Shown here one piece after another: positions 498 to 9,225 of a stretch of 9,225 nucleotides of DNA (within the stretch, counting starts at the first letter, position 1; each line of letters begins with the position of its first letter). Source of the stretch: Oikopleura dioica (lineage: Eukaryota; Animalia; Chordata); contig OU015571.1 of assembly GCA_907165135.1 (NCBI GenBank), positions 1 to 9,225 of the forward strand, read 5' to 3'. The position numbers and the translations under genes are program-made. The notes below the pieces were generated by a model. It did no database searches and was not told the origin of the DNA. It worked only from the letters and a program-made list of their open reading frames with translations.

Positions 498-1007
498 ATT
501 ATTCTGTTTTTTTTAACATTTTTTTACTTTTTAAGATTAAACAGAACAACTAGTTTTCTAGCTCTCCTATTTTTGTAGCCTTAATAGTGATTAGTAGAAA
601 TGTTATAAAAATTATTACACTTTCAGACAATATTTTCATAGGCATTGTTGTCCTAAAGACTTGACTACTAGGAAAAGATACTCAAATATTAGAAGTTTAA
701 AAGATTTATGTCAAATTTCGCTATAGATTTATCCGGTTTTTTTAATTTCTGCTGTAGAAATATGTGGTCAATTAGTTCGTCCAGTGTCTTTAACATGTCG
801 TTTAAGATCTAATATTTCCTCCAGACATTTATTAATAAGTATATGTACTTCTTCTACATATTTTTCTGTCAATTTAGCTCCAACCAGGTTTATTATATGG
901 TTCCTATTTATGCCAAGATACTTAATATTTGAAATTGGTGTTGCTCTTATTCAAAGTTATGTCTACAGTTTTTAATTTCTGACTACAATAAAGAATGCAA
1001 AAGATAA
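498..1007 (+). CDS. atp6: ATP synthase F0 subunit a, shortened (~169 aa), frameshifted at homopolymers
   Basis: VEMCGQLVRPVSLTCRLGSNISSGHLL and FEIGVALIQSYVYSF match the ATP6 R-L-x-x-N-x-x-x-G-H and E-x-x-V-A-x-I-Q-x-Y-V motifs. The frame is continuous if T8 507-514, T7 519-525, T5 570-574, T7 737-743 and T5 969-973 are read as T6, plus two unplaced +1 nt near 675-720. Stop TAA 1005-1007. Confidence 0.88.
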
Positions 1008-2939: not shown

Positions 2940-4430
2940 ATTCTACACAGAAGAAAAAAAGCTTAAATTTACAAAGGATTTTATTATGCTCAAAATTTGA
3001 AATAAGGGGTTTTATTAGTCTTAAACCACTTTTTTGTTGCACCTATAACTATAGGTGCTCTAAAAATATTTGTGAATTTAGCCTAGGAAATGTAAGTTTC
3101 AGATGCCTTTATTTTCAATTTTATGTTTGCTTATACTAGGTTTTCATCTATTACTTTCTTCTTTGTGTTTATAGTATAAGGCATTAATCATAAAGGAAAA
3201 GGGAAGAGGAAGAAAAGAAAGGAAATAGACGGAAGAATTCAATATAAGCAAACATAAAATTGAAAATAAAGGCATCTGAAACTTACATTTCCTAGGCTAA
3301 ATTCACAAATATTTTAGAGCACCTATAGTTATAGGTGCAACAAAAAAGTGGTTTAAGACTAATAAAATCCCTTATCTCAAATTTTGAACATAATAAAAAT
3401 CCTTTGTAAATTTAAGCTTTTATTGTTGTTGTTTATGGTAAGATGCTTTTATTCTACACGAAAAAAAAAAAAAGAAAAGCTTAATTTACAAAGGATTTTT
3501 ATTATGTTCAAAATTTGAGATAAGGGATTTTATTAGTCTTAAACCACTTTTGTTGCACCTATAACTATAGGTGCTCTAAAAATATTTGTGAATTTAGCCT
3601 AGGAAATGTAAGTTTCAGATGCCTTTATTTTCAATTTATGTTTGCTTATATTGAATTCTTCCGTCTATTTCCTTTCTTTTCTTCCTCTTCCTTTTTCCTT
3701 TATGATTAATGCCTTATACTATAAACACAAAGAAGAAAGTAATAGATGAAAACCTAGTATAAGCAAACATAAAATTGAAAATAAAGGCATCTGAAACTTA
3801 CATTTCCTAGGCTAAATTCACAAATATTTTTAGAGCACCTATAGTTATAGGTGCAACAAAAAGTGGTTTGAGACTAATAAAACCCCTTATTTCAAATTTT
3901 GAACATAATAAAAATCCTTTGTAAATTTAAGCTTTTTATTGTTGTTGTTTATGGTAAGATGCTTTTATTCTACAAAAAAAAGCTTAAATTTACAAAGGAT
4001 TTTTATTATGTTCAAAATTTGAAGTAAGGGGTTTTATTAGTCTTAAACCACTTTTTTGTTGCACCTATAACTATAGGTGCTCTAAAAATATTTGTGAATT
4101 TAGCCTAGGAAATGTAAGTTTCAGATGCCTTTATTTTCAATTTATGTTTGTTTACTGTACCTATCTCCCTCCCATTATTTCTCTTCTTTTCTTTGCTTAT
4201 ATTGTAAATAGCAAAATTTAAGACAAAAAAAGAAAAAAGAAGAAGTAGATGGAAGAATCTAATATAGGCGAACATAAAATTACAAAAAAAACGCATACGG
4301 ACATCTGAAATTTACATTTTCTAAGGCAAATTTACAAATATTTTAGAGCACCTATAGTTTAGGTGCAAAAAAGTGGTTTAAGATTAATAAAATCTCTTAT
4401 TCTAAGTTCTAAACATAATAAAACCTTCTG
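2940..4430. repeat. Non-coding control-region-like array: three ~515-bp tandem units, each an ~180-bp inverted repeat pair around an ~107-bp loop
   Basis: Arms F1 ~2956-3135 / R1 3243-3421, F2 ~3475-3650 / R2 3758-3937, F3 ~3974-4154 / R3 ~4263-4430 (degenerate). Direct spacer ATTGTTGTTGTTTATGGTAAGATGCTTTTATTCTAC after 3421 and after 3937. Confidence 0.95.
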
Positions 4431-4451
4431 TTATTTCAATTTTTTTTTTTT

Positions 4452-5957
4452 TTATAGAGTTCTAGAATAAGGACCTTCTTCCCAAGAATGTATTTTGGTA
4501 GGCAGTCTGAATATTTGATCAACAGGTAATACATATCTTATTGTGGACACTAAATTAGACAAGTTACTTTTTAAAGACCATAATATTACAATTGTAGAAG
4601 CAATAGTAACTAATAAAGACCATCTAATTAGACGATTTGTTCCTACTATTAAAGGTGAATAATGGATGTAACGACGAGGCATTCTTTCAATTCTTAGTTT
4701 ATGTATAGGAAAGAATACTCTATTTACTCTTAAAGAAAATACTATAGTTCTTACTATTATAGAAGTTTCCATAATGTACAATCTAGAGAATACAGGCCAA
4801 TAATGAACAGATCTTATTACTACAGCAGAAGTGGCTCTTATACTCAAAACATAGTGGAAATGAGCAACAACGTAGTAAGTATCATGCAGATCTAAATCAA
4901 TTGTAGCACTACTACAAACAATTCTGGTACATCTTCTTAAAGTAAAAACCAAATAAATAATACAGCCCAAATTAAAGGTAATGTTACGTATAGATTGTTT
5001 GAATTGATATTGGCTAACCAAGTAAAAACTTTTACTCTAGTAGGAATTCTGATTATAATAGTGGCAGCACTAAAATACATTTTAGAGTCTGTGTCTATTC
5101 TGGCAGAATATATATGATGAGCCCAGACAACAAATCTTAAAAACCAATTCTTATAATAGACCATATCATACCGTAATAACCCCACATACGAGCAGAATCA
5201 ATGTTAAACTCAATTACATGACTTAATAGTCTAAATCTAGGTAAAATAAGTACATATACTTCTGGGTGCCTAAAAACCAGAAAAGATGTTGAAATAATAA
5301 AGCATCTCTTCTACCTCTGTATTCGAAAAAGCTTGTTCTAAAGTGACGGTCAAATAAGATTATAGTAATAGCTCTAGCTAAAACTGGTAATGTAGTTAAC
5401 AATATAAAACTTGTTACTAATATACACCATAGAAATAGAGCAGCATTATAAATTTGTGTTCTTTTGGAGAATTTAAAATTATAGTTACTATAAAGTTGGC
5501 ACTACCTAAAATAGAAGAAACTCTGGCACAATGTAAACTGAAGATTACCATATCTATACAATTTTCACTAGTGCTTAATGGAGGATAAATAGTCCAACCT
5601 GATCTTGTACCTCTTGATTTTATACTTTGAACTAAAAATATGGAGGCTGGCATCATTATCCAAAAGAAAAGTTGTTTATACGTGGAAAAGATATGTCTGG
5701 AGTAGTTACAAAAAGAGGGATTAACCAATTTCTAAATCTTCTAATTAAAAAAGGCATAATAAAGAAGAAAACTATTACAATTCTATGCCTAGTAACTACA
5801 GTATTGTAATGATGATTAGTTAAAACACTAGTTCTTGGAGATATTAACTCTAAACGAATTAGTCTAGATAAGGAAGTTCTAATTAAAGCAAAAATAGTCT
5901 AAGTGTTTGGTATAACACTCTAATATCTTTATGGTTTACGGAACATATCCAACGAAT
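4452..5957 (-). CDS. cox1: Cytochrome c oxidase subunit I (~503 aa after correction)
   Basis: [65 protein letters not shown]. Six +1 corrections (5890-5894, 5662-5665, 5450-5452, 5272-5276, 5139-5143, 4944-4948) give 1512 nt. Start ATT 5957, stop TAA 4452. Confidence 0.97.
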
Positions 5958-6573: not shown

Positions 6574-6574
6574 T

Positions 6575-6638
6575 TGCAACACCTCTTTTGAGGATCTTAA
6601 GATTATAAGTCTTACGTTTTATACTTAAACTATGTCGC
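6575..6638 (-). tRNA. trnM(uau): tRNA-Met, anticodon UAU (reads AUA)
   Basis: Cloverleaf: acceptor GCGACAT/GTGTTGC + A, D-arm GTTT/AAAC, anticodon stem TAAGA/TCTTA with loop CT-TAT-AA, T-arm CCTC/GAGG. trnM(UAU) is a known tunicate mitochondrial feature. Confidence 0.9.
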
Positions 6639-6640
6639 TG

Positions 6641-6721: not shown

Positions 6722-7595
6722 TTAGAAATAAGCAGCATTTCTAACATAAAATAGGGCGTACAATCTAATCCATACTACATCGACAAAATGCCAATACCAA
6801 ATACTTGAAACTAATCTTACAGCACGTCTATTTCTTATATCTCTTTTGGATCTACGTAACAAACTCCATACTAAAAAGACACTCTAATAATAACATGTGC
6901 TCTATGAAATCTTGTTCTTAAGAAGAAGACAGCTCTATAAATTCTGGTTATAATAGTATATTTAGCATCTAAATATTCTTTATATTGTAATTTAACAAAA
7001 ATAGTCTTAATAAAATAGAAAATACAAATCTTATTTTAAAATAGCTTTTTATTCTAGCCTTTAACCTATGATATCTAAATGTAGCATGAAAACCGCTAGT
7101 AATTAGGACAGCTGTATTTACTATAGGTACCCCGAATCTATCGATAAGTTCTATACCTATTCTACGGTTGTTTGGGAATCTTCTAGAGTACTGGTCTTCA
7201 GAAATAAAGCTATTACAATAGCCCCAAAAAAGAAAAATGCTAAAGAAAAGACAAGCTTCACTTACTAAAAAGAACTTTATACCTAATTTTAAATTAGAGT
7301 GAGTTTTCACTGTATGAAATATAGGCTCTGTAGCCAATTTCAAAAACCAATTAAATATTCTAATGAAACTTATAGAAACTAAAATTAAAATTACTTTTTC
7401 AATTCTCAAAAGACCAAATAATCTTAAGAGTCTTGAGGAAAGTTCAGAAACTTCTCTTAATTCTGGCCTAATTTTATAAGCAAATTCTACGTAGTCTACT
7501 CCGGATATCCAAGTCCATAGGCACATTAAAGCAACCCAAACACTTAAAGATCTGGTTAAAGGCATAAAAGATGGATATATTATATGTTGTCTAAT
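6722..7595 (-). CDS. cox3: Cytochrome c oxidase subunit III (~289 aa, with a large insertion)
   Basis: HMMYPSFMPLTG, GMKFFLVSEA, NTAVLITSG, GFHGAHVIIG, WYWHFVDVVW. Needs T5->T6 at 6997-7001 and 6873-6877. Stop TAA 6722. The ATT start at 7595 is tentative. Confidence 0.93.
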
Positions 7596-8463
7596 ATAAT
7601 TTTTTTTTGGATTAAGATTCAGAGCTTTTGTATTTTTAGTAGAAAAATTGAAGTCTACATGTTTATTGAAGTTTTATCTATTAGACTGATCTTTCTTTAT
7701 TGAACTTCTTCTACTAAAGAAGCCATATCTAGATTTACCTATTTAATATCTTTTGGAATTATTATAAGATCAGCTTTCGTTCTAGATATAATCTGGTTTT
7801 ACAGAAATATTAATATATATTTATTTATAACTATTATGTCTATTAGAGTGGTAATATTCTTATCAAAACTCCCTATTTTTATCTGCACTATTGGCTAACA
7901 AAAGCGCACGTGGAAATTGTGACCATTAGATCAGCCATTCTTAGATCCTTAATATTAAAAATAAGGTTTTCTAGCTTCTCTTTTTTTAATAGAGGAACTA
8001 ATAATGGCTTTAGCTGTATGCCTTCTTCCTTGTTTTTGTATGATAAGAACTATCGATTTTAAAATTTGAGTTGCCTACTCCTCAATTTTACATATAACTG
8101 TTTACAGAATGAGAGCAATAATCTTCCACATTTTTATTTCTGACCTTTATCTAATTCCTCACACCCTAATGTCTAGAATAATGTTCTTCTTTCTAAGATC
8201 AGTTTATTCAGTTATAAGAACTCGAATTTTAAACTATATTTTCTATAGACCCATAAGATCTTTAGTACTATTTTGAGTTAGATTGCCTATTTTATCTTTG
8301 TTTTTAGTAGAAATATCTTATTTTCTGATATTTTTTTACTTCTTTTTCTATGACAATTTTTTTGGTTCGTTAATTTCATAATTTTCTTGAAATTAGATTA
8401 AGCTTTCTATCAAAATCTGTCTATAGAACAACTAAAAAGTTTTTAAGTCTAATTACATATTAG
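7596..8463 (+). CDS. nad4: NADH dehydrogenase subunit 4, N-terminally truncated (~270-290 aa)
   Basis: KLPIFYLHYWLTKAHVE, IDFKIWVAYSSILHM, PHTLMSGMMF, GLPILSLFLVE. Needs T5->T6 at 7876-7880 and T7->T6 at 7981-7987; T7->T6 at 8331-8337 and 8357-8363 extends the ORF. 3' end is TAA 8399-8401, or TAG 8461-8463 with one further +1. Confidence 0.88.
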
Positions 8464-8843: not shown

Positions 8844-8882
8844 TTTTTTCTCTTCTTCTTTTTTTCTTTTCTTTTTTTTTTT
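8844..8882 (+). repeat. C-interrupted poly-T tract preceding the tandem repeat
   Basis: TTTTTTCTCTTCTTCTTTTTTTCTTTTCTTTTTTTTTTT read directly from the sequence. Confidence 0.9.
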
Positions 8883-9225
8883 GATTTTCTGCTATTAAGC
8901 AATCAAAAATTTATAAGGATTTTTCACTTATTTTGAACAAAATTTTTGGCCTAGTAAAGAGGTATCTCATAGTATCTAAAAGAGATAATAAATTTCCTTT
9001 CAATATTTTGAAAATTACGTCAAAATCGCAAAATTTCAGCAATTTTAGGCTCCATTTTATTTTGCCATTTTATAAAATATTGTAAGGTTTAAAGTCTTTT
9101 CTTTTTTCCTGATTTTCTGCTATTAAGCAATCAAAATTTATAAGGATTTTTCACTTATTTTTGAACAAAAATTTTCGGCCTAGTAAAGAGGTATCTCATA
9201 ATATCTAAAAGAGATAATAAATTTC
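8880..9225. repeat. ~228-bp tandem repeat (about 1.5 copies visible), non-coding region
   Basis: TGATTTTCTGCTATTAAGCAATC starts at 8882 and 9110; GGCCTAGTAAAGAGGTATCTC at 8948 and 9177. The second copy is cut by the window end. Confidence 0.93.

Follow-up and report, generated by a model that had tools for sequence, protein, structure and literature searches.

Between cox1 and an opposite-strand gene in the mitochondrial DNA of the chordate Oikopleura dioica lies a tandem array in which neighbouring repeat units appear to carry the same large hairpin loop in opposite orientations, which raises the question of whether a unit has been inverted in the animal or only in the assembly. The window (the whole 9,225-bp stretch of DNA that was analysed) is the Nanopore draft mitochondrial scaffold chrUn_12 of O. 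dioica OKI2018_I69 (PMC8008620), which is cited as a partial assembly in PMC11384890. A profile search of the window returned Pfam matches to pieces of cox1, cob, nad1, cox3 and atp6; the gene pieces are frame-shifted at T runs, and arginine stands at expected glycine positions, a trait of the ascidian mitochondrial code. The gene order is the published order (Klirs 2024) read backwards, and the array sits between the 3′ ends of two convergent genes. The following features were located.

About 784-972, plus strand: atp6 (Pfam).
1044 to about 2050, minus strand: cob (Pfam).
2129-2824 (end approximate), plus strand: putative ORF196-like gene, on the T-rich strand, with its 3′ end towards the array.
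2951-4451: the array, three hairpin units, non-coding.
4452-5021, minus strand: 3′ portion of cox1 with its stop codon, running towards the array (E 2.5e-13 to positions 321-435 of the Pfam COX1 profile).
Between cox1 and tRNA-Met, minus strand: nad1 (Pfam).
6574-6639, minus strand: tRNA-Met (Rfam).
Beyond tRNA-Met, minus strand: cox3 (Pfam).
About 7560-8400, plus strand: T-rich stretch with no Pfam match, where the published order puts nad4.

The gene to the left of the array had been called nad2 in the initial annotation, a name that could not be kept. Its pieces (2129-2824) matched no Pfam family, and it is interrupted by four T7 runs (at 2317, 2424, 2494 and 2654). Judged by its position and opposite strand, it is a putative ORF196-like gene that matches ODI_mt_ORF196, the name used by Klirs et al. 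2024, who assigned the gene no established identity. On the other side of the array, cox1 (4455-5728, minus strand) is broken into at least four pieces in shifted frames, a fragmentation consistent with known poly-T (poly-U to 6U) editing sites and with the collapsed homopolymers of the draft. At the end of the contig, 8869-9225 holds two direct copies of a ~228-bp unit that are about 90% alike, and the long repetitive control region (22-28 kb) of the complete HiFi genome presumably begins here.

The array is a chain of arm, large loop, inverted arm and small spacer, repeated without a break to give three tandem units at a spacing of 506-516 bp (~510 bp each). Its elements, none of which is assigned to a strand, are as follows.

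2921-2950: S0, spacer, a diverged direct copy of S1 and S2 at the left edge of the array (family D9).
2951-3135: L1, left arm (arm alignment).
3136-3242: loop 1, 107 nt, pyrimidine-rich then purine-rich, with an EcoRI site at 3235-3240.
3243-3427: R1, right arm (3063-3135 and 3243-3315 are 100% complementary, pair I9).
3428-3460: S1, spacer, centre of the ~1-kb palindrome and central loop of the minimum-energy fold.
3461-3650: L2, left arm, with an A13 run at its start (arm alignment).
3651-3757: loop 2, 107 nt, reverse complement of loop 1, with an EcoRI site at 3653-3658.
3758-3942: R2, right arm (3548-3637 and 3772-3861 are 100% complementary, pair I5).
3943-3971: S2, spacer, a direct copy of S1 (alignment).
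3972-4156: L3, left arm, close to L1 and L2 (arm alignment).
4157-4261: loop 3, diverged (alignment with loop 1).
4262-4451: R3, right arm, a diverged edge copy ending in T14 that abuts the cox1 stop (arm alignment).
2956-3937: composite near-perfect palindrome of ~1 kb, unit 1 against unit 2 about S1 (alignment and fold).

The edge elements S0, loop 3 and R3 are far more diverged than the homogeneous central units, and this combination of diverged edges and homogeneous centre favours a natural tandem array. Other copies of the unit in the same genome were searched for and none was seen; matches were confined to this contig, with no nuclear copies. A candidate degenerate arm copy to the left of S0 (2825-2920) was dropped as its local alignment scores were too low.

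Runs of A open each junction of a spacer with a left arm (A7 at 2954-2960, A13 at 3461-3473 and A8 at 3974-3981), and a T14 run (4440-4453) abuts the stop codon of cox1 on the minus strand. The latter agrees with the published rule for gene ends, TAA and then a genome-encoded poly-A; homopolymer run lengths are unreliable in a Nanopore draft, and the true runs may be much longer. Each of the six arms also has an internal palindrome, for example 3037-3056 (family D2; 9-bp stem, 2-nt centre, GCACCTATA..TATAGGTGC), which is kept even in the diverged R3 apart from a 1-nt deletion.

Alignment of loop 1 with loop 2 showed that the two are reverse complements at 106 of 107 positions without a gap, as the initial annotation had proposed, the sole difference being A4G3 against A5G2 at 3201/3692. 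Compared directly, the same two loops are 58% alike. The repeat search recovered the corresponding inverted pair (I1) as 3031-3265 against 3628-3862, 235 nt at 98%, and on the sequence as assembled the loop match cannot be attributed to chance. The spacers keep their direct orientation, as had also been described: S1 and S2 agree at 33 of 33 positions directly and at 46% as reverse complements, and S0 and S1 at 71% directly and 57% as reverse complements. Loop 3 had been placed in the orientation of unit 1, a placement that the alignment does not bear out, with an identity to loop 1 of 65.5% direct versus 61.9% inverted; as a quasi-palindrome, the loop has 58% identity to its own reverse complement, and its orientation is therefore weakly discriminated.

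The inverted arms that flank the loops, given as ~180 bp in the initial annotation, were found at ~185 nt each. The 73-90 nt beside loops 1 and 2 are 100% complementary, and over whole arms the differences amount to 0-3 substitutions plus homopolymer indels. Within unit 1, L1 and the reverse complement of R1 agree at 171 positions, with 3 mismatches and 2 gap columns. Between the units, the inverted comparisons gave 0 mismatches (R1 reverse-complemented, against L2) and 2 mismatches (L1 against R2 reverse-complemented), while the direct arm pairs of units 1 and 2 gave 3 each. L3 differs from the other arms by 5-6 mismatches, and R3 by 14-20 mismatches and 20-26 gap columns.

With loop 2 inverted, units 1 and 2 are reverse complements of each other as wholes. 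Unit 1 matches the minus strand of 3462-3937 at 97% and the plus strand of 3469-3974 at 87%. The predicted lowest-energy structure of 2941-4440 (-614 kcal/mol) is a single very large hairpin, with units 1 and 2 paired to each other. As read from these alignments, the event would be better described as the inversion of a whole unit, or as a 1-kb palindrome around S1. Only two arm sites, 3001 and 3009, favour inversion of the whole unit; they are 8 nt apart, and since both are symmetric about S1 they do not locate the breakpoints, and homogenisation across the small hairpin at S1 explains them equally. With two informative sites of this symmetry, use of the arm substitutions as a breakpoint map was set aside. 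When unit 1 is set against the reverse complement of unit 2, the core of the comparison (2961-3416) shows three substitutions (2989, 3022 and 3201) besides differences in homopolymer length, and due to the substitutions the two units are taken to be separate copies and not one sequence used twice.

The tandem repeat as such has been published for the Okinawa lineage between cox1 and ORF196 (Bliznina 2021 Fig. 7b; PP146516 in Klirs 2024), and the array studied here is the same repeat at the same position of the same genome: tandem units between cox1 and the opposite-strand ORF next to cob. The published repeat is described as a hard-to-assemble tandem repeat, without the hairpin build, the 1-kb palindrome or the inverted loop, and in the literature searched no description of these three features was found. 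What is new here is that unit 2 is a better match to the reverse complement of unit 1, that a ~1-kb palindrome results, and that the copies are distinct.

A loop exchanged for its own reverse complement has a documented counterpart in small hairpins, whose loops are inverted by replication template switching (Monttinen and Loytynoja 2022, PMC8794818). In those cases, as here, the loop is swapped with its length kept and the stems are perfect: loops 1 and 2 are 107 and 107 nt and match at 106/107, and the stems are 100% complementary over 73-90 nt. Loops measure a few bases and stems ~6-20 bp in the documented cases; in O. dioica a 107-nt loop is held between 185-nt stems, and the event lies within a tandem array. 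The equal-length inverted loop, the perfect adjacent stems and the direct spacers together favour an inversion between inverted arms. We therefore favour, at a probability of roughly 0.6, the reading that the array at 2951-4451 is real and lineage-specific and that unit 2 is an inverted copy of unit 1, produced by template switching or recombination between the arms; this figure covers a real inversion whether fixed or still flipping.

During replication or repair, a nascent strand or a crossover would switch between the perfectly complementary arms of one hairpin, either as copy-choice in replication or as a reciprocal crossover. Everything between the switch points would then be re-copied or exchanged as its reverse complement, comprising the loop and possibly most of the arms, while the spacers would stay in direct order and the outcome would be a ~1-kb palindrome around S1. 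A double switch that re-entered at an R arm would also duplicate the spacer, and would thereby explain both the identity of S1 with S2 and the match of unit 2 to the reverse complement of unit 1. The choice between template switching and reciprocal recombination, the fixed or flipping state of the array, and any role that it has are matters that we infer.

The main rival to a real inversion is a misassembly or consensus artefact, in which the true loops would all have one orientation, or the units another number, and opposite-strand reads would have been mis-piled across the palindromic arms. The sequence basis is one assembly, made from 2019 R9.4 Nanopore reads of unamplified DNA; only reads of at least 1 kb were used, with a Canu error limit of 10.5%, followed by three rounds of Racon and then Pilon. 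Its authors flag this very region as error-prone, and a Flye assembly came out ~2 kb longer (PMC8008620), both of which speak for an artefact, as does the median Nanopore read length of 840 bp. Inverted repeats are also reported to degrade Nanopore base calling (Spealman 2020, as cited in a later paper). The arms make up ~72% of each unit and have the same sequence on both strands. Being palindromic, they would let reads align either way at ~88% identity (an estimate based on how alike the loops, spacers and arms are, not a computed value), near the 10.5% limit of Canu. Differences of the homopolymer type, which is typical Nanopore noise, account for the single difference between the loops and for most of those between the arms. 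Against this, orientation would have had to switch twice inside a single 477-nt unit, in reads of at least 1 kb and with both flanking spacers direct, and three rounds of Racon with Pilon would be expected to favour the orientation present in spanning reads. The three substitutions tell the copies apart, and the palindrome centre S1 is a genuine spacer homologous to S0 and S2 and not an adapter or fragment end. An artefact of this kind is a serious possibility, but a minority one; if it is the correct reading, the array is a warning that hairpin arrays can assemble with individual units inverted.

A fold-back chimeric read was considered as a source of the palindrome and rejected, as S2, unit 3 and cox1 continue in direct orientation past the centre and the flanking genes are in the published order. 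An independent HiFi assembly of another Okinawan individual was reported to have tandem repeats between cox1 and ORF196 (Klirs 2024). Repeats at the same position in the HiFi data, the documented inversion of loops by template switching and the stability of the hairpins together favour a real inversion.

The initial annotation had interpreted the array as the footprint of recombination between the flanking arms, and as a sign of active intramolecular recombination. The footprint stands as the likeliest origin, given an equal-length inverted loop, perfect stems and direct spacers; the word "active" does not, as the sequence records a state only. A suggested link to the strand switches in gene order was not upheld, since gene order and strands are the same in the Bergen lineage, where this repeat is reported to be missing (Klirs et al. 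2024).

A state of ongoing exchange would nevertheless be a variant of the favoured inversion. The units would flip often, and the pattern in the contig (+,-,?) would be one sampled or majority path through a structural heteroplasmy collapsed into a single sequence. The perfect 73-90-nt stems beside the loops suggest continuing homogenisation of the arms, and inversion isomers around long inverted repeats coexist in the amphimeric mitogenomes of stingless bees (Meliponini) and in plastids (PMC10839653). The likeness to these systems is that two inverted repeats enclose a unique segment, which occurs in both orientations in an organelle genome, in the bees in animal mtDNA. The inverted repeats of plastids and bees, however, are kilobases long and gene-bearing, and their isomers are alternative states of one locus that were seen in reads, whereas the O. 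dioica array is non-coding and presents its two orientations in neighbouring paralogous units of one consensus contig. All three small spacers also have the same orientation although they too are flanked by arms, which is unexpected under free recombination between arm pairs. A collapsed heteroplasmy of this kind is rather unlikely, and it is equally doubtful that the array is actively flip-flopping, with each ~510-bp unit present in both loop orientations within one animal by ongoing arm-to-arm exchange.

Folding of single-stranded DNA gave -191.7 kcal/mol (z -35) for L1-loop1-R1 and -187.2 kcal/mol (z -43) for R1-S1-L2, so that the two hairpin registers are predicted to be extremely, and equally, stable. 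This equality would also suit an origin in hairpin-primed replication, of rolling-hairpin or telomere-like type, with the array as a relic of a linear or concatemeric mtDNA, as would the alternation of arm, loop, arm and spacer, which resembles concatemer junctions, and the statement of the HiFi authors that a linear concatemer could not be excluded. The flip and flop forms of parvovirus ITRs and poxvirus telomeres share with the present loops both the terms and a hairpin loop in two inverted forms. Those hairpins, however, lie at the ends of molecules and arise by hairpin transfer, whereas the O. dioica array is internal to a circular-mapping genome, with genes of conserved order on both sides and a complete genome that assembles as a circle. 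By reasoning, plain copying of a hairpin-ended unit would moreover give one loop orientation per strand, and such a relic is considered highly improbable.

Each loop is crossed by a small hydrophobic ORF with both its ends in the arms (at 3144-3275 on the minus strand, 3642-3749 on the plus strand and 4105-4296 on the minus strand). A coding or regulatory switch could in principle work through such an ORF, of 43 aa in code 11 and ~66 aa in the ascidian code, if inversion presented it on either strand. Loops 1 (minus) and 2 (plus) both keep this ORF open, and in shape it is reminiscent of short membrane subunits, among them atp8, a gene that this genome lacks. No Pfam family was found for the loop ORF (best match E 0.04-0.08, below threshold), loop 3 is open in a frame that is not the homologue of the loop-1 frame, and the homologous frame pair came lowest of the nine combinations. 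The loop ORF was rejected as a gene on these grounds, without family support and without frame conservation between loops 1 and 3. A loop that is pyrimidine-rich then purine-rich yields such an ORF from composition alone, and the ORF is probably a product of base composition. The ORFs of the window match respiratory-chain families or nothing, with no recombinase gene among them of the kind that a site-specific invertase would supply, and a switch of this type is scarcely credible. Rfam matches of the hairpins to microRNA precursors were far below gathering scores, and these, like a tRNA-Leu(caa) called by ARAGORN in mitochondrial mode within L3 (3976-4058), were judged to be hairpin false positives.

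An exact 29-mer of the arm core was absent from the metagenome and viral contigs searched, and a search of metagenome contigs with the cox1 piece found relatives at no more than 45% identity, none of them appendicularian-like. A word search of other data sets with the 84-aa stop-free frame across S0 and L1 gave no candidate. Logan-derived proteins match the cox1 piece at 92-93% identity (P0001 and P0003).

The array is most likely a by-product of hairpin-driven repeat turnover, and an effect on 3′-end formation of the two converging transcripts is possible. If the inversion is real, it would be a clear-cut natural record of exchange between inverted repeats, by strand switching or recombination, in the mitochondrial genome of a chordate, and a rare case of a near-perfect palindrome of ~1 kb kept in animal mtDNA. 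It would also help to explain the resistance of this region, and of Oikopleura mtDNA generally, to PCR and assembly. Active flip-flopping, if true, would show directly, and in a form that can be counted, that intramolecular DNA exchange is frequent in chordate mtDNA. The ~1-kb palindrome would then be tolerated, and might serve the convergent genes, which have no tRNA punctuation, as a transcript end in both directions.
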